From Mobula hypostoma (taxonomy: Eukaryota), in assembly GCF_963921235.1 (NCBI RefSeq), contig NC_086115.1:48918001-48982000 (forward strand): 64,000 nucleotides of DNA, read 5' to 3'. The first letter of the stretch is position 1. Each line of letters opens with the position of its first letter. A model generated the notes under the pieces. The model did not search any database. It saw only the letters and a program-made list of their open reading frames with translations, and was not told where the DNA came from. Below are positions 4,090-17,991 of the stretch, one piece after another. A program made the position numbers and the translations under genes.

Positions 4090-4889
4090 TCTAAATACAG
4101 GCCCTTCAGCCCAAAAGTCCATGCATACCAAATGATTCCAATTTCTTGCATTTGGCCCATATTCCTCTAAATCCCATCCCCCTAAGTACCTATCCTAGTG
4201 CTTCTTAAATGATAGCATTGTATCCACCTCAACTACTTGTTCCATACATTCCCCACCCACTGCATGAAAAAGTTACCCCTCGGGTCACTATTAAATCTCG
4301 CCCCTCTCACCCTGACTCTGTGCCCTGTAATTTTGATCTTCCCTACCTTGGGAAATGATGTCCATCTTATCAATGACTCTCACAACTTAAACTTTCTATA
4401 AAGTGCCTCTTATTCTCCTAATTCTAAGGAATAAAGACCTAGCCTGATCAACTTATCATGAATAGCAAGAGGTCCAACACTGACTGCTGCAGCACACCAC
4501 TGATCACCTACCTCAATTCTGAGAAACCACCTTCCACTACCATTCTCTGCTTCCCTCCTCCGAGCCAGTTTTGAATCCACTTAATCAGCTGTCCCTGAAT
4601 TCCTTGGGATGTAACCTTCCAGACAAGCCTACCATGGGGGATCTTATTGAAGACCTTACTAAAGTCAAAATAGAGAAATCTAGCACCAAACCTTCATCTA
4701 TCTCTTTGGTTACCTCTTCAAAAAAACTCTGTGAAATTTTTGCCAAGCATGACTTTCCAAGCCCAAAGTCATACTGGCTTCTCCTAATCAAACTCATTCT
4801 ATCCAAATTCTACTCAGAGTTTCCTCCAATAACTTGCCCATTACTGACATCAGGTTGACTGGCCTGTGGTTCCCTGCCTTGTCCTTCTT
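4090..4889 (-). mobile_element. Old CR1 remnant, continuing at 8266-8331 and 10915-10960
   Basis: Decayed RT fragments (KKDKAGNHRPVNL, FFEEVTK). The sequence resumes on the far side of the L1 and CR1 insertions. Confidence 0.8.
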
Positions 4890-7800
4890 TGCTAATAACT
4901 TAGCAAAAACTTTAGAATCAACATTTAATAAAGATATTGGTCTATAAGATGCACATTGAGCAGGATCTTTATCCTCCTTTAATATTAAAGAGATAGACGC
5001 TCTATTAAAAGATTCAGGAAGTTTACCAAGTTTCAATGAAGCCTCAAAAACCCTACAGAGCCAAGTGATTAATGAAGGAGCAAAACATTTATAAAATTCT
5101 ACGGTAAACCCATCAGGGCCAGGAACTTTCCCCAAATTCATAGAGAAAATAACATGCTTAATCTCATCCATGGTAATAGGAGTATCTAACATAGAAGCCA
5201 TATCCTGTGAAATCTCAGGGAAGTCTAAATTATCTAAAAAATCATTCATATATTTAGAATCTCGAGGAGACTCTGATTGATATAAGGAAGAGTAAAAATC
5301 ACAGAAGGTTTGATTAATCCCCACATGATCAAGTATTAGTCGATCATTTTGGTTATAAATCTGATTAATTTGAGATTTAGCATAATTAGACTTCAATTGA
5401 TTAGCCAACAATTTACCAATTTTGTCACTGTGTAAATAAAATTCACTTCTTGTTTTCTTTAATTGGTTTACAATCAAGGACGAGAGTAATAAACTGTGTT
5501 CCATTTGAAGTTCAGTTCTTTGTTTATATAACTCCTCAGAAGGAGCTATAACATATTTCTTATCAATTTCCTTAATCTTGTCCACAATTACCAACTCCTC
5601 CTGCTTCTGCTTCTTCCTCAAAGCAGCAGAATACGAGATAATCTGACCACGAATATAAGCTTTAAAAGTATCCCAAAGAGTGTTAACAGAAATATCCTCT
5701 GTATGGTTAATTGTAAAAAAAAGATCAATCTGTTCATTCATAAAGTTAACAAAGTCCGAGTCCTGAAGCAACAGCGAATTAAAACGCCATTGTCTATTAT
5801 TTTGTATATTGGCCTGAATTTTAATAGAAAGCTTAAGTGGAGCATGATCCGAAATGGTTATAGAATCATAATCACATTTAATCACTGAGGGAATAAGACG
5901 AGAATCAATAAAGAAATAATCAATTCTTGAATAGGAATGATGAACATGTGAAAAAAAAGAAAAATCTTTTTCCTGAGGATGCAAAAAGGGTCAAATGTCC
6001 GTCGACCCAGAATCAGAAAGAAATGAATTAATCAAAGTTGCAGATTTATTAGGTAAGGTCCGTAAAGGAGCCGAACGGTCCAAAACTGGAGACAAACAGG
6101 TATTAAGATCTCCGCCCCAGATCAATGAAAACTCATTCAAATTCGGAAACTGATTAAATAATGATTTATAAAATTCCGGACAATCCATATTAGGAGCATA
6201 AACATTAACCAAAACTACTTTTTTATTAAATAGTAAACCACTAACCAATAGAAATCTACCATTCGGATCAGAAATAATACCATGCTGTATAAAAGTAACT
6301 GAGGAGTCTATAAAAATAGAGACGCCTCGAATCTTAGCATTGGAGTTCAAATGAAACTGTTGTCCCTTCCAGAATTTAAAAAAAACGTAGTCTGTCCCCC
6401 CTCCGCACTCGGGTCTCTTGTAAGAATAAAATTTGTGCTTTAAGTCTCCGGAACACTTTAAAAACTTTTTTCCTTTTAATAGGATGATTAAAACCATTAG
6501 TATTCCAGGAGCCAAAATTAATAATAGACTCCATAAACCCTAAAGTCAACCCATAACAAGGAGGATTGACGATAGGCTCGACCCACGAACCCGGAGAGGG
6601 AACAGAACATACAAGAGATACCGGGAAGAAGAACGCAACCAATACTTCAATAATGTATATAGCCCAAGAAGAAAGAAACTAAAAAGTGAAGCCCCTCCCA
6701 CCACCCCCCACCCCATGTCCCCAAAGCTAAGTCTAACGCAGACCAGCCCGAAAGAAGCAAGCACTAAAACTACCCCCATGACTTCCGGTATACGCTCCCT
6801 AAAAAAAAGTGTAAATATAAAAAAGATCAGCTGATTATAAAACAGTAAAAGAATAAAAAAAGATAACTCAATTAAAATAAACACATAACAGAATAAAAGC
6901 CAGAAAATATATGAAAAAAAACCACAATAAACCCCAGACCCATGAATAAACAAAACAAAAATAATAAGATTATTAACATAAACTAGTTATAAAAACCTAC
7001 AAAACAAAATAGATTTAAAAAAAAAACTACAAAATTTAAGGCCACAAAGGAAATACGTAAAATGACAATAAGGAAGTAACCACCCAGAATCCCCTGGGAA
7101 AAAGAAAGAAATGACGCAGTTAAAAAGAAAGTTTAGCAACCATATTAAGTAATCAAAAATAAACTTTTCTGCCCATATAAGGCAAAAAAAATTAAGACCG
7201 ACAAATTCACAGCCTCCGATCAGCGGAGATAGTTAAAAAATTACAATTAAGATGTTGAAGGTGAAAATTGATCCAAATAGCTCTGGGCATCCGATGGAGA
7301 GTCAAAAAAACGGAGGGGTCCATCCAACGTACGAATCCTTAGACGTGCAGGGTAAAGCAGCGCTGGTCTTAAATCCATCTTGTAGAGTTCCGACATCACA
7401 GATCTGTAACGAACCCGTTGATCCCGGATTGGTTTACTGAAATCTTCCACGAATCGGAATTTAAGATCCAGAAAATCAATGAAACCCTTAGATCGAACGA
7501 ATCGAAACAGTTTCTCCTTGTCTTGAAAGTAATGAAACTGTAAAATAACATGTCGAGGTCTATCTGACCTAGGCGAGTATGATGGAACTCTGTGAACACG
7601 ATCCAATAACGGTGGTTGGTCAGGAAATACAGTAGGAAATGCATCTTTTAAAAGTTGAGAAAAATACTTCATAGGGTTATCAGATTCAACAGCTTCACGC
7701 ACCGCGATCATTCGTAGATTCTGCCGTCGCATTCTAGATTCTAAGTCCAGAGTTTTTAAAGGTCAGAAAATCAAGTTTCTTCTTCATTACATTAGTTGTT

Positions 7801-8265
7801 TCTTCGATTTTCCCCATCTTAAGCTCACTTTGTTGTGTGGATTTTTGAAGATCAGATATAGCCGACTGATGTTCCGTAATAGATGTTTGTATCTTATCGA
7901 TTGAATCGGCAATTTTCTGGAAATGAATTGAAATTTCCGCATGAATCAGCTCCGTAACAGAGGTTGAAATTTCCCTTTGAATTAACTCCGATATAGCTTT
8001 CAAAGTCACCGGTGGTTCAGTCGGAGGGAAATCGGTACCTTTTGGTTTAACCGGAGGTTTGCCATCCTTCCCGTTTTTCCCATTCTTAGACATAGCAGAC
8101 CTTAAACGCATCCAGTTATCGAAGAGCCCAATTTGATTCAAAGTATTGTAAAAGTTTATGCCTTAATGGTTAATTAAAATATAGCTGATCAGAAGAAAAA
8201 ATACTCAGAGGTAATGGAGCAAGTCAAGAACGCGACTTCACTCCATGAGTGCTACCGGAAGTCCC
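4890..8265 (-). mobile_element. L1 of the same family: 5'-intact, 3'-truncated, frameshifted
   Basis: Same 5' end (gacttccggtagc). ORF1 split near 7740 and ORF2 frameshifted; ends at SKVFAKLLA. 14-bp TSD gccttgtccttctt (4876-4889 and 8266-8279). Confidence 0.95.
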
Positions 8266-8331: not shown

Positions 8332-10908
8332 TGGGTAGAAGTCAGGAACAGGAAGGGAGCAGTTACTCTATTGGAAGTATTCTGTAGGCCCCCTTGAAGC
8401 AGCAGAGATACCGAGGAGCAGATCGGAAGGCAGATTTTGGAAAAGCGCAAAAATAACAGGGTTGTTATCATGGGTGACTTTAACTTTCCGAATATTAATT
8501 GGCACCTGATTAGTTCCAATGATTTAGACGGGGCAGAGTTTGTTAAGTGTGTCCAGATGGATTCCTGTCACAGTATGTTGACAGGCTGACTAGGGGGAAT
8601 GCCATACTAGATCTAGTATTAGGTAACAAACCGGGTCAGGTCACAGATCTCTCACTGGATGAGCATCTGGGGGACAGTGACACCCGCTCCCTGGCCTTTA
8701 GCATTATCATGGAAAAGGATAGAATCAGAGAGGGCAGGAAAATTTTTAATTGGGGAAGGGCAAATTACGAGGCTATAAGGCTAGAACTTGCGGGTGTGAA
8801 TTGGGATGATGTTTTTGCAGGGAAATGTACTATGGACACGTGGTTGATGTTTAGGGATCTCTTGCAGGATGTTAGGGATAAGTTTGTCCCGGCGAGGAAA
8901 ATAAAGAATGGTAGGGTGAAGGAACCATGGGTGACAAGTGAGTTGGAGAATCTAGTCAAGTGGAAGAAGGCAGCATACATGAGATTTAGGAAGCAGGGAT
9001 CAGATGGGTCTATTGAGGAATATAGGGTAGCAAGAAAAGCTTAAGAAAGGGCTGAGAAGAGCAAGAAGGGGGCATGAGAAGGCCTTGGCGAGTAGGGTAA
9101 AGGAAAACCCCAAGGCATTCTTCAATTATGTGAAGAACAAAAGGATGACAGGAGTGAAGATAGGACCAATTAGAGATAAAGATGGGAAGATGTGCCTGGA
9201 GGCTGTGGAAGTGAGTAAGGTCCTCAATGAATACTTCTCTTCGGTATTCACCAATGAGGGGGAACTTGATGATGGTGAGGACAATATGAGTGAGGTTGAT
9301 GTTCTGGAGCATGTTGATATTAAGAGAGAGGAGATGTTGGAGTTGTTAAAATATATTAGGACGGATAAGTCCCCGGGGCCTGACAGAATATTCCCCAGGC
9401 AGCTCCAGGAGGCGAGGGAAGAGATTGCTGAGCCTCTGGCTAGGATCTTTATGTCCTCATTGTCCACAGGAATGGTATCGGAGGATTGGAGGGAGGCGAA
9501 TGTTGTCCCTTTGTTCAAAAAAGGTAGTAGGGATAGTCTGGGTAACTATAGACCAGTGAGCCTTATGTCTGTGGTGGGAAAGCTGTTGGAAAAGATTCTT
9601 AGAGATAGGATCTATGAGCATTTAGAGAATCATGGTCTGATCAGGGACAGTCTGCATGGCTTTGTGAAGGGCAGATCCTGTCTATCAAGCCTGATAGAGT
9701 TCTTTGAGGAGGTGACCAGGCATATAGATGAGGGTAGTGCAGTGGATGTGATCTATATGGATTTTAGTAAGGCATTTGACAGGGTTCCACACGATAGGCT
9801 TATTCAGAAAGTCAGAAGGCTTGAGATCCGGGGAAGTTTGGCCAGGTGGATCCAGAATTGGCTTGCCTGCAGGAAGCAGAGGGTCGTGGTGGAGAGAGTA
9901 CATTCGGATTGGAGGGTTGTGACTAGTGGTGTCCCACAAGGATCGGTTCTGGGACCTCTACTTTTCATGATTTTTATTAATGACCTGGATGTGGGGGTAG
10001 AAGGGTGGGTTGGCAAGTTTGCAGACGACACAAATGTTGGTGGTGTTGTGGATAGTGTAGAGGATTGTCAAAGATTGCAGAGAGACATTGATAAGATACA
10101 GAAGTGGGCTAAGAAGTGGCAGGTGGAGTTCAACCCGGAGAAGTGTGAGGTGGTACACTTTGGAAGGACAAACTCCAAGGCAGAGTACAAAGTAAATGGC
10201 AGGATACTTGGAAGTGTGGAGGAGCAGAGGGATCTGGGGGTACATGTCCACAGATCCCTGAAAGTTGCCTCACAGGTAGATAGGGTAGTTAAGAAAGCTT
10301 ATGGATTGTTAGCTTTCATAAGTCGAGGGATAGATTTTAAGAGTCGTGGGGTAATGATGAAGCTCTATAAATCCCTGGTTAGGCCACACTTGGAGTACTG
10401 TGTCCAGTTCTGGTTGTCTCACTATAGGAAGGATGTGGAAGCATTGGAAAGGATACAGAGGAGATTTACCAGGATGCTGCCTGGTTTAGAGAGTATGCAT
10501 TATGATCAGAGAATAAGGGAGCTAGGGCTTTACTCTTTGGAGAGAAGGAGGATGAGAGGAGACATGATAGAGGTGTACAAGATAATAAGAGGAATAGATA
10601 GAGTGGATAGCCAGCGCCTCTTCCCCAGGGCACCACTGCTCAATACAAGAGGACATGGCTTTAAGGTAAGGGGTGGGAAGTTCAAGGGGGATATTAGAGG
10701 AATGTTTTTTACTCAGAGAGTGGTTGGTGCGTGGAATGCACTGCCTGAGTTAGTGGTGGAGGCAGATACACTAGTGAAATTTAAGAGACTACTAGACAGG
10801 TATATGGAGGAATTTAAGGTGGGGTTTATATGGGAGGCAGGGTTTAAGGGTCGGCACAACATTGTGGGCCGAAGGGCCTGTACTGTGCTGTACTGTTCTA
10901 TGTTCTGT
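8332..10908 (+). mobile_element. Relatively young 5'-truncated CR1 LINE (end of endonuclease plus RT)
   Basis: ORF 9085-10971 has SGVPQGSVLGP, FADD and RPHLEYCVQFW. One frameshift near 9040; gttctat-type tail; 6-bp duplication gtaata (8326-8331 and 10909-10914). Confidence 0.93.
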
Positions 10909-11300
10909 GTAATAGCTAACAATGAAACAAATCTCTGCAGGGGCCTCCACAGTTTCTTCTTTGGAATGTGAGAGGAAACTGATGCACTGAAAGGAAATCC
11001 ACGTGCTCACAGGAAGGATGCACAAACTTCTTACAGACAGCATTGGAATTGAACTCCAAACTCCGACCCCTCAAGCTGTAATAGTGTTGCCCTAACCATG
11101 GCATCCCTTTATGCCAGAGTCACTGAAGCTTTTTCTGTGTCTTGTACCATTATCACTACAACTGGATGTTTGTTATAAGCTAAGCACAGAACTGATGAGG
11201 AGAAGCATTATTTGAATTAAATTCAGTATTGTTCTGCATGATTGAACTGAATTTATTAAAAACAAAAAATTAAATTTTGCTCATAGTTATTGGATTAAAT

Positions 11301-11806: not shown

Positions 11807-12245
11807 GTGAGTAGATTGATTCTGTAGCAGATTTTGTTTAATAAATGTGTTAAAAGGTGTTATACAGTCACTCAGCATTTACAAAGTTTTTCAGACAAAA
11901 TGTTCACTTTTTTTTTGCAATGGATCACAAAGGGGGAATTGAGGAAAGAAGCACAAGGTGGAATGTTTATAGATGTTTTGTTATCTTGTTCCCAGATCCT
12001 ACATCCCATGCAGATGTTTTCTATAGCATTGCTTCATCTTTTTAATTAAATCTAACACAAAGTCTGCAGATTGAGACTTCCGGTAGCGCTCATGGAGTGA
12101 AGTCGCGTTCTTGACTCGCTCCATTACCTCTGAGTTTTTTCTCTCTATGGTCAGCTATACTTTAATTAACTATTAAGGCATCAATTTTTACAATACTTTG
12201 AATTAAACTGAATTCTCTGACAATTGGATGATACTGAGATCGGCT

Positions 12246-13127
12246 ATGTCTAAGAACGGGAAAGACGGCAAGGATGGTAAACCTCCGGTTAAACCGAAAG
12301 CTACGGATCTCCCTCCGACTGAATCACCGGTGACTTTGGAAGCTATATCGGAGTTAATTCAGAGGGAAATTTCAACCTCTGTTAGGGAGATGATTCGTAC
12401 AGAAATTATGGGCTCTGTTAAAGACCTGATTCATATGGAAATCTCAACTAAGTTCCAGAAAATTGCCGATTTAATTGATAAGATGCAAACATGTATTGCG
12501 GAACATCAGTCGGCTATATCTGGTCTTCAAAAATCCGCGCAACAAAGTGAGCTTAAGATGGGGAAAGTCGAAGAAACAATTAATGTAATGAAGAAGAAAC
12601 TTGACTTTTTGACTTTTAAAAACTCTGACTTGGAATCTAGAATGCGACGGCAGAATTTACGAATGATTGGCGTCAGGGAAGCCGTGGAAGCTAACAACCC
12701 TATGAAATATTTCTCCCAACTTTTAAAAGATGCATTCCCTACTGTATTTCCTGACCAACCACCGCTACTGGATCGTGTTCACAGAATCCCATCATACTCG
12801 TCTAGGTCAGATAGACCTAGGCATGTTATCTTACGTTTTCATTACTTTCAAGACAAGGAGAGACTGTTTCGATTCGCTCGATCTAAAGGTTTCATTGATT
12901 TTTCGGATCTTAAGTTCCGATTCGTGGAAGATTTCAGTAAACCAATCTGGGACCAACGGGTCCGTTACAGATCCGTGATGTCGGAATTCTATAAGATGGA
13001 TTTAAGACCAGCGCTGCTGTACCCTGCACGTCTAAGGATTCGCATGTTAGATGGAGCTCTTCGTTTTTTTGATTCTCCATCGGATGCCCAGAGTTATCTG
13101 GATCAACTTTCATCTTCAACATCTTAA
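12246..13127 (+). CDS. L1 ORF1p (coiled coil plus Transposase_22-type RRM/CTD)
   Basis: Motifs LESRMRRQNLRMIG, LDRVHR, PRHVILRFH, ALLYPARLRI. An in-frame ATG at 12228 is an alternative start. Confidence 0.92.
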   Translation: MSKNGKDGKDGKPPVKPKATDLPPTESPVTLEAISELIQREISTSVREMIRTEIMGSVKDLIHMEISTKFQKIADLIDKMQTCIAEHQSAISGLQKSAQQSELKMGKVEETINVMKKKLDFLTFKNSDLESRMRRQNLRMIGVREAVEANNPMKYFSQLLKDAFPTVFPDQPPLLDRVHRIPSYSSRSDRPRHVILRFHYFQDKERLFRFARSKGFIDFSDLKFRFVEDFSKPIWDQRVRYRSVMSEFYKMDLRPALLYPARLRIRMLDGALRFFDSPSDAQSYLDQLSSSTS

Positions 13128-13848
13128 TTGCCTTTTTTTAATTTTCTCCGTTGATCGGAGGCTGTGAATTGGTTGGTTTTAACTTTTCTGTGCCCTATTT
13201 GGGCAGAAAAGTTTACTTTTGATTTCTTAATATGGCTGCTAAACTTTCTTTTTAACTGCGTCATTTCTTTCTTTTCCCAGGGGATTCTGGGTGGTTACTT
13301 CCCTTTTGTCATCTTACGTATTTCCTGTGCGGCCTTAAATTTTGTAGTTTTTTTTAAATTTTATTCTGTTTTGCTTTTTATAATCATTTTATGTTAATAA
13401 TCCTATTTTTTTTGTTGCTGTGTCTATTCATGAGTTTGAGGTTTATTGTGGTTTTTTTTTAATATATACTTTCCGGCTTTTGTTCTGTTCTGTGTGTATT
13501 TTAATTGAGCTAACTTTTTTTTACTTATTTTTTTTACTGTTTTACAATTAGCCGATCCTTTTCATATTTATACCTTTTTTTTAGGGAGCGTATACCGGAA
13601 GTCATGGGGGTAGTTTTAGCGCTTGCTTCTTTCTGGCGGGTCTGCTTTAGATTTCGCCTTGGGGTCCTGGGGTGGGGGGCGGTGGGAGGGGCTTCACGTT
13701 TTAGTTTGTTTCTCTTTGGGCTATATACATTATTGAAGTATTGGTTACGTCCTTTTCCCCGGTATCTTTTGTATGTTCTGTTTCCTCTCCGGGTCTGTGG
13801 GTCGCGCCTATTGTCAATCCTCCTTGTTATGGGTTGACTTTAGGATTT

Positions 13849-16800
13849 ATGGAGTCTATTATTAATTTTGTCTCCTGGAATACTAATGGTCTTAATCATC
13901 CTGTTAAAAGGAAAAAAGTTTTTAAAGTGTTCCGGAGACTTAAAGCACAAATTTTATTTTTACAAGAGACCCATGTACGGAGGGGGGACAGACTACGTTT
14001 TTTCAAATTTTGGAAGGGACAACAATTTCATTCGAACTCCAATGCTAAGATTCGAGGCGTCTCTATTTTTATAGACTCCTCAGTTACTTTTATACAACAG
14101 GATATTATCTCTGATCCGAATGGTAGATTTTTATTGGTTAGTGGTTTATTATTTAATAAAAAAGTAGTTTTGGTTAATGTTTATGCTCCTAATATGGATT
14201 GTCCGGAATTTTATAAATCATTGTTTGATCAGTTTCCGAATTTGAACGAGTTTTCATTGATTTGGGGCGGAGATCTTAATACCTGTTTATCTCCAGCTTT
14301 GGACCGTTCGGCTCCTTTACGGACTTTACCTAATAAATCTGCAAATTTGATTAATTTTTTCCTTTCTGATTCTGGGTCGACGGACATTTGGCGTTTTTTG
14401 CATCCTCAGGAAAAAGATTTTTCCTTCTTTTCACATGTTCATCATTCCTATTCAAGAATTGATTATTTTTTCATTGATTCTCGTCTCATTCCTTCAGTGA
14501 TTAAATGTGATTATGATTCTATAACCATTTCGGATCATGCTCCACTTAAGCTTTCTATTAAAATTATGGCCAATATACCAAACAATAGACAATGGCATTT
14601 TAATTCGCTGTTGCTTCAGGACTCGGACTTTGTTAATTTTATGAATGAACAGATTGAGCTTTTTTTTACAATTAACCATACAGAAGATATTTCGGTTAAC
14701 ACTCTTTGGGACACTTTTAAAGCCTATATTCGGGGTCAGATTATTTCGTATTCCGTTGCTTTGAGGAAGAAACAGAAGCAGGAGGAGATGGTAATTGTGG
14801 ACAAGATTAAAGAAATTGATAAGAAATATGTTATGGCTCCTTCTGAGGAGCTATACAAACAAAGAACTGAACTTCAAATGGAACACAGTTTACTACTCTC
14901 GTCCTCGATTGTAAACCAATTAAAGAAAACAAGAAGTGATTTTTATGTTCACAGTGATAAAATTGGCAAGCTGCTGGCTAATCAATTGAAATCTAATTAT
15001 GTTAAATCTCAAATCAATCAGATTTATAACCAAAATGATCGATTGATATTGGATCATGTGGGGATTAATCAAACCTTTTGTGATTTTTATTCTTCTTTAT
15101 ACCAATCAGAGTCTCCTCGAGATTCTAAATATATGAATGATTTTTTAGATAAGTTAGACTTCCCTCTGATTTCACAGGATATGTCTTCTTTATTAGATAC
15201 TTCCATTACAATGGATGAGATTAAGAATGTTATTTTTTCTATGAATCTGGGGAAAGCTCCTGGCCCTGATGGGTTTACCGTTGAATTTTATAAATGTTTT
15301 GCTTCTTTATTGATTCCTTGGCTCTATAAGGTTTTTGAGGCTTCTTTGAAACTTGGTAAACTTCCGGAATCTTTTAATAGAGCATCAATTTCTTTAATAC
15401 TAAAGAAGGATAAAGACCCTGCTCAATGTGCATCTTATAGACCAATATCTTTATTAAATGTTGATTCTAAAGTTTTTTCTAAGTTATTAGCAAATAGACT
15501 AGAAAAAGTACTTCCTTCTATTATTTCGGAAGACCAAACGGGTTTTATTAAAGGTCGTTACTCTTTTTATAATATTCGTACATTGTTAAATATCGTTTAT
15601 ACTCCCTCACAAAATGTTCCTGAGTGTGTTATTTCTTTAGATGCCGAGAAAGCTTTTGATAGAGTAGAATGGCCTTATTTATTTAAGGTGCTTGAAATGT
15701 TTAATTTTAGCTTGAAATTTATATCCTGGATTAAACTGTTATATTACTCCCCTGTAGCCTCGGTTCGTACTAACTCCTTAAACTCACCTTTTTTTCCTCT
15801 CTTTCGTGGTACTCGACAAGGCTGTCCTCTTAGTCCCCTATTATTTGATATTGCATTAGAACCTCTTGCAATTGCTATTCGAGAATCTTTAAATATTACT
15901 GGGATAACTCGGGGATTAAAGTCCCATAAATTATCACTCTATGCTGATGATTTACTTTTATATATTTCTAATCCTGAGAGATCCATTCCTGCTGTTTTAG
16001 AGTTATTAGCACAATTTGGTCTTTTCTCAGGTTATAAATTAAATCTTAGTAAGAGTGAACTTTTTCCGATTAATAAACATCTTCCCTTATATTATAAATT
16101 TCCATTTAAATTGATTAATAATTACTTTTCATATCTTGGGATTAAAATTACTTGTAAACATAAAGATTTATTTAAGACTAACTTTTTACCATTAATAGAC
16201 CATATTACTCAACTTTCATCTAAATGGTTTCCCTTATATTTAACTTTGATTGGTCGTATTAATGCAGTTAAGATGTTTTTTTTGCCAAAATTTTTATATG
16301 TGTTTCAGGCATTACCAATTTTCGTTCCTAAATCTTTTTTTGATAAAGTTGACTCTAAAATTTCTTCATTTATTTGGCAGAACAAGAATCCGAGACTGGG
16401 TAAAATACATTTACAGAAAGCTAAGAGAGATGGAGGTTTAGCATTACCTAACTTTAGATTTTATTATTGGGCTATTAATATTCGACATATGAAATTTTGG
16501 TTACTTGACCGGGACATACTATTTATTCCTAAATGGGTAGCATTGGAATTACAATCTGTTCAGGGTTATACACTTGGTTCTATTTTAGGTTCCTCTCTTC
16601 CTTTTGATTCGAAACGTCTTAAGCAGGTCTCTAACCCGATAGTTAAATATGCTTTGCGCATTTGGTTTCAATTCAGAAAATTTTTTGATCTTAATCAATT
16701 CGGGTTAGCGATTCCTATTTTAGGTAACATATTTTTTCCTCCCTCTTTTACGGATCGCGCTTTTCAAACTTGGAAGACTAAGGGTATTTTACGGTTTTTG

Positions 16801-17625
16801 GATTTATTTTTAGATGGTTCCCTTATGTCTTTTGAACAATTATCTAATAAATATAACTTATCAAGAATACATTTTTTTAGATATTTACAAGTTAGAAATT
16901 TCCTAAGTACTATACTTACTTCCTTTCCAATGCTTCCTCCTATATATATTTTAGATTCGATAATTAACCTTAATCCATGTCAGAAAGGTGCATCGGCTAT
17001 GATTTATAATATTATTATGAAACTTAGGAAAGCTCCATTTGATAAGATTAGGGTAGATTGGGAACAGGAATTGGGGCTTACCATTTCTGTGGATGATTGG
17101 GGGCAGATTTTACAATTAGTTAATACTTCCTCTATTTGTGCTAAACATTCCCTAATTCAATTTAAAGTGGTTCATAGAGCACATATGTCCAAAGATAAGT
17201 TAGCGCGTTTTTACTCGCATATTAATCCTTTCTGTGATAGATGTTCGGGGCAGATAGCCTCTTTAACTCATATGTTTTGGTCTTGCCCTACTTTGGAAAC
17301 TTTTTGGAGAGATATTTTCAATATTATTTCTAAGGTATTAAATATAGATATCTCTCCTCACCCTATTACTGCTATCTTTGGACTACCTAAAATTTCTAGT
17401 AATCTTTCCCCTTCAGCCCGTAGAATGATTGCATTTCTTACTTTAATGGCGAAAAGATGTATTTTACAACATTGGAAAGAGCTTAATGCTCCAACTACCT
17501 TTTTTTGGTTTTCTCAGACGATTTTATGTTTGAATCTGGAGAAAATTAGAAGTAACCTTTATGATTCTTCATTTAAATTTGAACAGATTTGGGGACCTTT
17601 TATTCGATATTTTCATTTAATGTAA
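13849..17625 (+). CDS. L1 ORF2p (APE endonuclease, reverse transcriptase, CCHC finger), 1258 aa
   Basis: Endonuclease motifs SWNTNGL, LQETH, GGDLN, SRIDY, SDH; RT motifs GTRQGCPLSP and YADD; finger CDRC-x8-H-x4-C. No stops or frameshifts. Confidence 0.97.
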   Translation: MESIINFVSWNTNGLNHPVKRKKVFKVFRRLKAQILFLQETHVRRGDRLRFFKFWKGQQFHSNSNAKIRGVSIFIDSSVTFIQQDIISDPNGRFLLVSGLLFNKKVVLVNVYAPNMDCPEFYKSLFDQFPNLNEFSLIWGGDLNTCLSPALDRSAPLRTLPNKSANLINFFLSDSGSTDIWRFLHPQEKDFSFFSHVHHSYSRIDYFFIDSRLIPSVIKCDYDSITISDHAPLKLSIKIMANIPNNRQWHFNSLLLQDSDFVNFMNEQIELFFTINHTEDISVNTLWDTFKAYIRGQIISYSVALRKKQKQEEMVIVDKIKEIDKKYVMAPSEELYKQRTELQMEHSLLLSSSIVNQLKKTRSDFYVHSDKIGKLLANQLKSNYVKSQINQIYNQNDRLILDHVGINQTFCDFYSSLYQSESPRDSKYMNDFLDKLDFPLISQDMSSLLDTSITMDEIKNVIFSMNLGKAPGPDGFTVEFYKCFASLLIPWLYKVFEASLKLGKLPESFNRASISLILKKDKDPAQCASYRPISLLNVDSKVFSKLLANRLEKVLPSIISEDQTGFIKGRYSFYNIRTLLNIVYTPSQNVPECVISLDAEKAFDRVEWPYLFKVLEMFNFSLKFISWIKLLYYSPVASVRTNSLNSPFFPLFRGTRQGCPLSPLLFDIALEPLAIAIRESLNITGITRGLKSHKLSLYADDLLLYISNPERSIPAVLELLAQFGLFSGYKLNLSKSELFPINKHLPLYYKFPFKLINNYFSYLGIKITCKHKDLFKTNFLPLIDHITQLSSKWFPLYLTLIGRINAVKMFFLPKFLYVFQALPIFVPKSFFDKVDSKISSFIWQNKNPRLGKIHLQKAKRDGGLALPNFRFYYWAINIRHMKFWLLDRDILFIPKWVALELQSVQGYTLGSILGSSLPFDSKRLKQVSNPIVKYALRIWFQFRKFFDLNQFGLAIPILGNIFFPPSFTDRAFQTWKTKGILRFLDLFLDGSLMSFEQLSNKYNLSRIHFFRYLQVRNFLSTILTSFPMLPPIYILDSIINLNPCQKGASAMIYNIIMKLRKAPFDKIRVDWEQELGLTISVDDWGQILQLVNTSSICAKHSLIQFKVVHRAHMSKDKLARFYSHINPFCDRCSGQIASLTHMFWSCPTLETFWRDIFNIISKVLNIDISPHPITAIFGLPKISSNLSPSARRMIAFLTLMAKRCILQHWKELNAPTTFFWFSQTILCLNLEKIRSNLYDSSFKFEQIWGPFIRYFHLM

Positions 17626-17991
17626 TATTTACCCTTCTTGTTTTTTCTTCACTGTTTTAATGGAGGTCGGGATTGAGGACGTGATTTTAAGTTTAACTCT
17701 GTTTGGTTTCAAGTTAGCCCATTGCTTTGCTTTGCTTTTAGTTAGTTGCACGGTGGGTTTTTTTTTGGGGTTTTTTTTTTTCTTTTTTTTCCATTGATAT
17801 ATATAAAATCTAGTATACTATTATGTTATCTTGGTTTCTTATGCTTAAATTACATTGTTTGTAGTATTTTCTTTTTGGTATTGTTATCTTTTGGAATTTT
17901 ATTATACTTTAACATTGTATTAATGTTTATATGGCTTACCTTTTTTGTATACTTACTCAATAAAAAGATTTAAAACAAAGTCTGCAGATTG

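Follow-up and report, generated by a model that had tools for sequence, protein, structure and literature searches.

A small ORF closing the ORF1–ORF2 spacer of a Mobula hypostoma L1 element: a putative relay for ORF2 translation

In an L1 element of Mobula hypostoma, the long spacer between ORF1 and ORF2 closes with a small open reading frame of 77 codons that ends just upstream of the ORF2 start codon, and a small ORF in the same position recurs in most of the L1 lineages compared. This layout is probably a conserved device that brings ribosomes to ORF2. The 77-codon ORF may act as a relay ORF, which would be translated and whose termination would be coupled to reinitiation on ORF2; a probability of about 0.6 is assigned to this reading. 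The window analysed is a stretch of 64,000 nt (NC_086115.1, positions 48,918,001 to 48,982,000), and all coordinates refer to it.

The element and its small ORF

The element is an L1-clade LINE of the fish/lizard type with a long spacer, as identified by its domains, TSD, AATAAA signal and GGACTTCCGGTT-type 5' terminus. It is young and full-length, and its ends are set by a 17-bp TSD (12057-12073 and 17975-17991), with one additional A at 12074. The 3'UTR contains AATAAA, and the A tail is very short. The features are as follows, with the basis of each in brackets.

12075..17974, plus strand: L1 copy 1, consisting of 5'UTR, ORF1, 721-nt spacer, ORF2 and 3'UTR with AATAAA (TSD and Pfam)
12075..12091, plus strand: 5'-terminal head GACTTCCGGTAGCGCTC, with a CTTCCGG site of the ETS type where the transcript begins; also the 5' arm of the inverted repeat (sequence)
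12092..12100, plus strand: mini-uORF ATGGAGTGA, ATG-GAG-TGA, immediately 3' of the 5' arm (sequence)
12228..13127, plus strand: ORF1, 299 aa (Pfam Transposase_22, L1 RRM-type domain)
13128..13585, plus strand: upstream part of the ORF1–ORF2 spacer, T-rich with 53% T (composition)
13571..13584, plus strand: pyrimidine tract and AG, candidate splice acceptor (sequence)
13586..13603, plus strand: inverted copy of the first 17 nt of the element, ending one base before the small-ORF ATG (duplex computation)
13604..13837, plus strand: small ORF (putative relay ORF), 77 codons, in another frame than ORF2 (ORF calls, comparison)
13661..13691, plus strand: G-rich box inside the small ORF with five G runs and the motif TGGGAGG, lying about 160-190 nt 5' of the ORF2 start codon
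13849..17625, plus strand: ORF2, 1258 aa, with endonuclease, reverse transcriptase and zinc knuckle (Pfam Exo_endo_phos, RVT_1, zf-RVT)
4888..8263, minus strand: copy 2, older, 3'-truncated and about 90% identical, with the same module (sequence comparison)

The ORF2 protein is 43-65% identical to fish L1 ORF2 proteins, and a search with the ORF1 protein found relatives only at 32-40%. The sequence details given in the initial annotation of the window were all recovered in place, with the exception of one T count, and are beyond chance. ORF1 ends at 13127 and the ORF2 ATG lies at 13849, which confirms the reported separation of 721 nt. The ATG at 13604 indeed stands in a strong context (G at -3, G at +4), and the ORF that it opens abuts ORF2 as described, with a TGA at 13835-13837, 11 nt before the ORF2 ATG. 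The upstream part of the spacer holds three ATGs, opening short ORFs of 7, 23 and 10 codons. Among the 40 best of 186 variable sites, common indel variants of the L1 family fall only in this part (13128..13585) and in the 3'UTR.

The module was also said to persist in a diverged second copy, and copy 2 retains every part of it on the minus strand: the 5' arm with the mini-uORF (8263-8238), the internal 18-mer (6797-6780), the small ORF (6779-6546) and the ORF2 ATG (6534). As annotated, the small ORF of copy 2 encodes 77 aa, of which 58 are identical to those of copy 1; the two ORFs differ by 24 substitutions and no indel. By codon position, the differences between the copies number 28, 15 and 46 in ORF1, indicating purifying selection, and 25, 19 and 65 in ORF2, again with a third-position excess. 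In the small ORF they number 11, 7 and 6, with no third-position excess, and 19 of the 24 changes are non-synonymous. The 77-aa peptide has no homolog in a set of 5.8 billion proteins, and neither this peptide nor 10 other small-ORF peptides match Pfam.

Recurrence among L1 lineages and the proposed relay

The comparison set comprised 31 L1 lineages from Logan contigs, Polypterus and metagenome contigs, all with an intact ORF2 and a long ORF1–ORF2 spacer and with less than 80% endonuclease-domain identity between lineages. In 28 of the 31 lineages (10 of the 10 first fetched and 18 of 21 further ones from metagenome contigs), an ATG-initiated ORF closes the spacer and terminates at the ORF2 start codon, while L034, L049/50 and L065 were set aside as exceptions. 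In L065, the leader is fused in frame to ORF2, which is the expectation if ribosomes enter at the leader's ATG; L022 has lost the ancestral small-ORF ATG, but its frame stays open from an ATG farther upstream. The 28 ORFs are 43-121 codons long, and their last stop base lies between -26 and +48 relative to the A of the ORF2 ATG. The stop falls at -15 to +30 in 25 of the 31 lineages, and the stop/start junctions include TGAATG, TGATG, ATGA and TAAtATG. Local dinucleotide shuffles reach the observed ORF length with P < 0.05 in 27 of the 28 lineages (median 0.01), although these P values are not fully independent because the lineages share ancestry. Among the ten first lineages, the small ORF is the sole ATG-ORF of at least 44 codons within the whole spacer in seven, and its ATG has a purine at -3 in eight. 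A shared start of the eight Logan contigs L012-L019, 104 nt before ORF2, was considered as a transcript start and rejected as a break in a poly-T run.

The frames relative to ORF2 split 15, 12 and 1, so that 27 of the 28 small ORFs are out of frame with ORF2. Of 378 peptide pairs, no more than 3 show similarity at E < 0.01. A recurrent layout combined with unrelated peptides and varying frames fits stop-start coupled reinitiation and not a functional peptide. Among the routes to ORF2 that had been suggested initially, the relay ORF is strongly supported by this comparison, which shows the layout and its conservation; from these we infer translation of the small ORF and a dependence of ORF2 upon it. 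A functional hydrophobic micro-protein encoded by the small ORF is very improbable. Most of the peptides are indeed hydrophobic (GRAVY 0.4-1.6), but this results from the T-rich composition, and the peptides of Polypterus and L103 are hydrophilic. The related lineages L002, L021 and L022 have a similar N-terminal block, but detectable similarity extends no further than the three pairs mentioned above. This block, which is too short, gives no frame-specific signal: its non-synonymous/synonymous ratio in the ORF's own frame is not below that in the other frames. The absence of third-position bias between the two window copies likewise speaks against a selected product.

In the proposed relay, ribosomes would initiate at the strong ATG 13604, translate the last third of the spacer and terminate at the TGA 11 nt before ORF2, where a fraction of the post-termination ribosomes would reinitiate on ORF2 by stop-start coupling. 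The act of translating and the site of termination would matter, the peptide would not. Such a relay would open the termination-reinitiation route of human L1, which has a short spacer, to an L1 whose spacer measures 721 nt. ATG 13604 might be reached through pairing of the capped 5' end with 13586-13603, through internal entry on the T-rich spacer, or through the chain of short spacer ORFs. Reinitiation after long ORFs is marked by a stop and a start no more than about 20-30 nt apart, which often overlap and differ in frame (PMC10275272), and the distance of 11 nt in the window element lies within this range.

Several observations count against the relay. Without a helper element, ribosomes that have translated 60-120 codons normally reinitiate inefficiently. 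Between the ORF1 stop and the small ORF, 68 ATGs were counted where 76 are expected, which is no depletion, and in L069 and L103 the small ORF overlaps ORF2 by +36 and +48 nt, which is long for backward reinitiation. GGGAG is present in 9 of the 10 first lineages compared with 2.8 expected, but this TGGGAG-like G-rich box lies about 120-280 nt upstream, farther than the motifs of viral TURBS. Over the 28 lineages, mean G content is highest in a conserved G-rich block at -280 to -140, while the sequence from -120 to -1 is rich in T and poor in G. Folding of the small-ORF region as RNA revealed no significant structure (z = -1.4 and +2.4). For known structured RNA elements such as IRESs, an Rfam covariance-model search of 12000-14000 returned only a chance-level snoRNA match (E = 0.61). 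A picornavirus-like Yn-Xm-AUG motif fits the window element (tract, 21 nt, ATG) but not its relatives and was dropped.

The 5' head, its inverted copy and other readings of the spacer

The GACTTCCGG head is the conserved 5' end of zebrafish and lizard L1, where transcription starts (PMC5381506), and CTTCCGG is an ETS/GABPA/ELK4 core (PMC6035183). The head (12075-12100) has exactly two occurrences in the window, as has the internal 18-mer when extended to include the ATG. The L1 head is preceded by untemplated G residues. The Met-Glu-stop mini-uORF noted after the pairing strand is present at 12092-12100, and all 15 lineages in which the CTTCCGG head was found have an ATG at nt 11-23 with a stop 1-5 codons later; the Polypterus L1, with a different head, contains a mini-uORF too.

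The inverted copy of the 5' end next to the small ORF was confirmed by computation. In the predicted RNA duplex of the two segments, 11 perfect pairs are followed by a 1-nt bulge and 6 more pairs (one G.U), with -31.1 kcal/mol. No other site in the whole element comes close to 13586-13603 as a partner of the first 20 nt (rank 1 of 584 windows; the next best reaches -17.9), and the 11-nt reverse-complement match occurred in 1 of 2000 block shuffles (P about 0.0005). RNA pairing of the 5' end with the spacer has moderate support, also from its recurrence and the swap test below, but is not universal: the pairing proposed initially is non-random here and recurs with different arms in 5 of 14 other lineages, but it is absent in 9.

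A more specific reading is that the capped 5' end (nt 1-17) pairs with 13586-13603 and places the cap beside ATG 13604, so that ribosomes would reach the small ORF and then ORF2 while bypassing ORF1. This is tentative and would be a shunt-like or factor-delivery supplement to the relay ORF, not a replacement for it. Among the 15 lineages with a CTTCCGG head, the window element (W1), L032, L038 and L055 have the strongest pairing of their first 20 nt in the small-ORF ATG region, which ranks second in L002 and fourth in L040, whereas rank 1 is reached by 10% of non-cognate heads, by 4.7% of shuffled heads and by 2.6% according to window share. In a swap test, cognate pairs outperformed permuted ones with P = 0.0075 (0.042 without W1) and, on only the 11 nt past the shared core, P = 0.0064, values that are optimistic because several test variants were run; a first swap test on 5 lineages, superseded by that on 15, had revealed no cognate advantage. 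The distal arms vary among lineages but remain complementary, and those of L032 and L040 pair through G.U to GGGAGC. The 5' arm of copy 2 carries one uncompensated G-to-A change that weakens the duplex to -25.7, although this copy is dead and the change lies at a CpG. The remaining 9 of the 15 lineages are unremarkable (ranks 8-198), the effect is modest after removal of W1, a G-rich block pairs readily with any pyrimidine-rich head, and a duplex of -31 kcal/mol at the cap should hinder ribosome loading. The suggested shunt also departs from the geometry of the CaMV 35S leader. The L1 would share with it a very short uORF near the 5' end and a long-range helix able to exclude a large segment, and the landing side fits, with the ATG directly 3' of the 3' arm; in CaMV, however, the short ORF precedes the stem, whereas here the 5' arm occupies nt 1-17, directly from the cap, so that the mini-uORF (nt 18-26) comes after it, inside the would-be loop. 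A three-part device of fish/shark-type L1, in which a cap-proximal head with mini-uORF, a lineage-specific head–spacer pairing that hands ribosomes to the internal ATG, and a relay ORF with a G-rich 40S-tethering box coupled to ORF2 would act together, is an improbable further reading.

Splicing and promoter activity were considered as other explanations of the sequence upstream of the small ORF. A 3' splice site at 13584, joining a 5'UTR donor to the small ORF and ORF2, is the least probable reading of all. The polypyrimidine tract and AG (tacc-T8-ag) are present and end at 13584, with 8 T and not the 9 first reported, and T-rich tracts with AG are also found upstream of the small ORF in L003, L005 and L021. 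Spliced L1 RNAs are known in human. No 13584/13585 joint was detected in the contigs of one DNA run and three possible RNA runs, in which rare forms could be missed, although spliced retrocopies of so abundant a family would be expected in the DNA run, and one contig covers 13356-13740 unbroken. Moreover, a good donor is lacking, the only GT of the head being 9 nt from the cap, and the tract with AG is not conserved over the 28 lineages. The proposed spliced ORF2 mRNA thus finds no support in these results. Less improbable, but still unlikely, is that CCGGAAGT at 13595-13602 constitutes a second predicted ETS-family site, which would drive sense transcription from within the element or, as an inverted copy of the initiating head, antisense transcription running leftward from about 13603. 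CTTCCGG is both the ETS core (PMC6035183) and part of the conserved L1 head at the transcription start (PMC5381506), GC-box-like G runs lie 60-90 bp from CCGGAAGT, W1, L002, L004, L021, L038 and L052 have a GGAAGT core no more than about 35 nt away from the ATG of the small ORF, and an antisense promoter is attributed to human L1 in work cited in PMC5381506. Yet the motif is absent in most lineages, and L032, L040 and L055 have the complementary site without a GGAA core (in L032 and L040 the partner is GGGAGC). A sense start downstream of 13604 would leave the conserved small ORF pointless, and the contig ends listed show no excess at 13586-13604.

Comparison with known systems and implications

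As cited in PMC5381506 and PMC4072516, human L1 ORF2 is translated by an unconventional termination-reinitiation (Alisch et al. 2006). According to these accounts, ORF2 is a downstream cistron that depends on termination of a nearby upstream ORF and whose output is kept low, a dependence that is proposed here as well; in human L1, however, the upstream ORF is ORF1 and the spacer measures tens of nt, whereas here ORF1 ends 721 nt away and a separate small ORF would supply the termination. Megabat L1 resembles the present element in its spacer of several hundred nt with small ORFs, and removal of all AUGs from this long spacer decreased retrotransposition 3.3-fold, which its authors took as support for reinitiation (PMC4072516). 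It differs in that a single conserved ORF abutting ORF2 is not described and that the spacer is inhibitory overall in human cells (PMC4072516), while the layout seen here is fixed lineage-wide among fish-type L1 elements.

The TURBS of caliciviruses and influenza B and the UAAUG of SART1 share with the L1 lineages a stop codon that overlaps the start codon or is at most about 30 nt away from it, in a different frame (ATGA, TGATG, TGAATG), and the upstream TGGGAG-like G-rich motif could tether a 40S subunit here as in TURBS (PMC10275272, PMC3894237). In contrast to TURBS, whose motif is complementary to 18S rRNA and displayed on a stem, the G-rich box is located 120-280 nt upstream instead of within about 90 nt, and a presenting stem was not found; the upstream ORF is a non-conserved leader and not a main gene as in the viruses and SART1.

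The non-mammalian vertebrate L1 elements described by Boissinot and Sookdeo (2016, PMC5381506) agree with the present one in their short 5'UTR with GGACTTCCGGTT at its start, their long T-rich ORF1–ORF2 spacer of 257-1032 bp and their T-rich 3'UTR, which terminates in AATAAA. That study proposes an IRES next to ORF2 and mentions no small ORF ending at ORF2, mini-uORF or inverted head; for long-spacer L1, only such predicted IRESs have been offered so far for ORF2. The initial view of the arrangement as undescribed is only partly correct: both the GACTTCCGG head and the long spacer had already been published (PMC5381506), but the ORF abutting ORF2 was not found in the L1 literature examined.

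How ORF2 is translated from a bicistronic L1 RNA is sharpest as a question for this ancestral type, in which the spacer spans several hundred nt and simple reinitiation after ORF1 seems implausible. A small ORF kept open up to the ORF2 ATG over dozens of deeply diverged lineages, with no conserved peptide, points to a concrete mechanism. If true, the relay would make the termination-reinitiation model of human L1 applicable to all vertebrate L1s and would account for the persistence of the long spacer. The recurrent complement of the 5' end beside the small ORF hints at an additional layer of long-range RNA control, and the three-part device, if true, would represent the ancestral vertebrate solution to L1 ORF2 translation and a case of pairing-directed ribosome transfer in a cellular element.

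L1 copies in the window and the parts of the inter-ORF module

The window contains one full-length L1 (copy 1) and an older, inverted relative (copy 2), and no further copies of the copy 1 family were found in the window.

Features of the two L1 copies (window positions)
12057-12073 and 17975-17991: 17-bp target-site duplication flanking copy 1
12075-17974, plus strand: copy 1, full-length L1 with the duplication on both sides, AATAAA and a very short A tail
12228-13127, plus strand: ORF1, with an L1 RRM-type domain
13661-13691, plus strand: G-rich box of copy 1, five G runs
13849-17625, plus strand: ORF2, 1258 aa, with endonuclease, reverse transcriptase and zinc-knuckle domains
8263-4888, minus strand: copy 2, older, 3'-truncated, inverted, ~90% identical to copy 1

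The initial annotation described a module between ORF1 and ORF2 of copy 1, and the observation is confirmed, with every part at its place. The spacer is 721 nt long, and its polypyrimidine tract plus AG does end at 13584, except that the tract contains eight rather than nine T. The adjoining 18-mer at 13586-13603 repeats the opening 17 nt of the element (12075-12091, the 5' arm) as their reverse complement, with 11 perfect pairs, a one-base bulge and six further pairs, one of them G.U. This duplex reaches -31.1 kcal/mol and the second-best site of the element -17.9, and an 11-nt match occurred in 1 of 2000 block shuffles. The ATG at 13604 lies in a strong context and begins a frame of 77 codons (the small ORF), which stops 11 nt ahead of the ORF2 ATG. 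The mini-uORF ATGGAGTGA (12092-12100) is present directly behind the 5' arm. Copy 2 retains all parts of the module, including 58 of 77 identical small-ORF residues, and its 5' arm carries one uncompensated CpG transition.

Contigs from four sequencing runs, one of DNA and three possibly of RNA, show a very abundant family with a depth that climbs toward the 3' end. Across 13400-14000, the contigs of the DNA run add up to a depth of ~116,000 where the spacer is T-rich; the sum grows to 189,000 within the small ORF and to 273,000 where ORF2 begins, which could reflect older subfamilies aligning only from there or many copies starting nearby. Directly past the truncation point of copy 2 (4400-4900, minus strand) are the decayed remains of a reverse transcriptase from a different LINE type, with a translation resembling a CR1/L2-type RT motif. 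The interval separating the two inverted copies holds a 628-codon TTG-started open frame (9085-10971).

An open frame ending at the ORF2 start

The evidence says that the small ORF is not a protein gene. Its peptide has no Pfam match and no homolog. Differences between the two copies at the three codon positions amount to 28, 15 and 46 in ORF1 and to 25, 19 and 65 in ORF2, a third-position excess that reveals purifying selection; the small ORF shows no such excess (11, 7 and 6), and 19 of its 24 changes are non-synonymous. The 19 amino-acid differences compare with a random expectation of 15.7 +/- 2.1. Because the frame would survive random substitutions in copy 2 with a chance of 22%, copy 2 alone proves nothing about frame conservation. 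The A content of the region is just 12%, and shuffling 13586-13848 yields a 77-codon ATG-ORF in 2.5% of cases, shuffling the whole spacer in 18%.

A search with the ORF2 protein of copy 1 retrieved fish L1 proteins with 43-65% identity, and contigs of nine fish L1 relatives were compared. Wherever the spacer is readable in these first-fetched lineages, an ATG-ORF terminates at the ORF2 ATG. A metagenome scan with an endonuclease-domain alignment provided 80 additional loci, 26 of which have an intact ORF2 and sufficient upstream sequence. With a lineage defined by less than 80% identity in the endonuclease domain, an ORF2-abutting ATG-ORF of 43-121 codons is present in 28 of 31 lineages, its last stop base lying at -26 to +48 relative to the A of the ORF2 ATG.

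Small ORF and ORF2 start in related L1 lineages (L-numbers denote lineages from contigs)
L002: 77 codons, 8-nt overlap with ORF2
L003: 76 codons, junction TGAATG
L004: 106 codons, 8-nt overlap with ORF2
L005, L021: junction ATGA
L022: junction TGATG
Polypterus: 87 codons, junction TAAtATG
L024, L025: overlaps with ORF2 of 28 and 20 nt
L034: exception, decayed copy
L049/50: exception, ORF2 start unclear
L065: exception, leader of 79 codons continuous in frame with ORF2

The observed length of the small ORF is significant in 27 of the 28 lineages (P < 0.05, median 0.01, local dinucleotide shuffles), and seven of the first 10 lineages have no other spacer ATG-ORF of at least 44 codons. The three possible frames relative to ORF2 are used 15, 12 and 1 times, and of 378 peptide pairs just 3 show detectable similarity. 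L022 has lost the ancestral small-ORF ATG, and an upstream ATG maintains the open frame. Thus, conservation applies to the open frame and its end point but not to the product, and this is the signature expected of translational coupling. A relay ORF, one of four routes to ORF2 that had been proposed, is well supported by the lineage comparison, and the small ORF probably couples to ORF2 translation. A stop-start distance within ~30 nt is a hallmark of reinitiation after long ORFs (PMC10275272), and removal of spacer AUGs reduced the activity of a long-spacer megabat L1 3.3-fold (PMC4072516). ATGs are not depleted between ORF1 and the small ORF (68 seen versus 76 expected); in copy 1, only two non-overlapping short ORFs, of 7 and 23 codons, lie on the path to the small ORF.

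The more distant lineage L065 is a natural variant, in which the hydrophobic leader (contig positions 1500-1740) lacks a stop. Entry at the leader ATG would yield an ORF2 protein with an N-terminal extension.

The 5' head, its spacer complement and other proposed routes to ORF2

In zebrafish and lizard L1, GACTTCCGG followed by an ATG-containing motif is a published conserved 5' terminus (PMC5381506), and CTTCCGG is the ETS core (PMC6035183). The CTTCCGG head is present in 15 lineages (copy 1, L002, L003, L004, L021, L022, L024, L025, L032, L035, L037, L038, L040, L041 and L055), often with an untemplated G ahead. Each of the 15 has an ATG at nt 11-23 whose frame stops after 1-5 codons, usually as ATGGAGTAG/TGA or as the minimal ATGTGA/ATGTAA, and Polypterus, which has a different head, contains a mini-uORF too. 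The early ATG-stop may have been conserved as a start-stop uORF; alternatively, its ATG may belong to a YY1-like box and be kept harmless. Human L1 has a similar quick stop behind its YY1-box ATG. Several independent insertions or contigs carry 1-3 extra G (or an A) ahead of GACTTCC, as seen at 12074 and 8264-8265 in the window; these bases fit untemplated addition opposite the cap, which would make the G of GACTTCC the first base of the transcript. In one DNA contig an L1 copy sits inside another L1, and the joint (17053 to 12075) carries GG.

Pairing of the 5' end with the spacer, proposed as a shunt that loops out ORF1, gave a negative result in a first test of five lineages. Testing the first 20 nt against ~540-590 windows in the 15 head lineages, with the target within 70 nt of the small-ORF ATG, identified this region as top partner in copy 1, L032, L038 and L055, as second in L002 and as fourth in L040. 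Rank 1 was reached by 10% of non-cognate heads, mostly on the perfect site of copy 1, and by 4.7% of shuffled heads, at a window share of 2.6%. Cognate head-spacer pairs exceed permuted ones (P = 0.0075; 0.042 without copy 1), also when only the 11 nt past the shared core are considered (P = 0.0064), and the distal arms are lineage-specific yet complementary. The initial annotation alternatively proposed the ETS core as a possible internal or antisense promoter; the partner of the core in L032 and L040 reads GGGAGC, a sequence that pairs by way of G.U and is no ETS site. The cognate excess and the differing but complementary arms give moderate support to a real, facultative RNA interaction, although 9 of the 15 lineages show nothing. 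Its geometry differs from that of the CaMV shunt, because the mini-uORF of copy 1 lies within the would-be loop. As for a spliced ORF2 mRNA, no junction at 13584/13585 was found in the contigs of any of the four runs, one contig covers 13356-13740 unbroken, and the tract plus AG ahead of the small ORF is unconserved in the lineages. The use of 13584 as a splice acceptor is rejected on present data.

The composition of the last third of the spacer is conserved and falls into two blocks, the first G-rich, with GGGAG or G runs, and the second T-rich. Across the 28 lineages, mean G content is highest at -280 to -140 from the ORF2 ATG, and the T-rich, G-poor block behind it reaches the ATG; nine of the first 10 lineages contain GGGAG, where 2.8 would be expected. 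The five G runs at 13661-13691 could form a G-quadruplex, and the G-rich box is a putative TURBS-like ribosome tether or a candidate pairing partner of the head CUUCC. The region has no significant fold and no Rfam match.

Relation to published L1 features

The arrangement had been considered undescribed, which is true only in part. The head motif, the long spacer, its T-richness and a predicted IRES adjoining ORF2 are already published (PMC5381506). That ORF2 depends on a termination event close upstream has been published for human L1, with hints of it in megabat L1. No account of a conserved ORF that terminates at the ORF2 start codon, of a conserved mini-uORF or of the inverted head complement was found in the literature covered, which excludes most subscription papers and Repbase notes, so that an earlier mention is possible. 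The proposed relay-ORF module is of clear interest for L1 and translation specialists and is directly testable.
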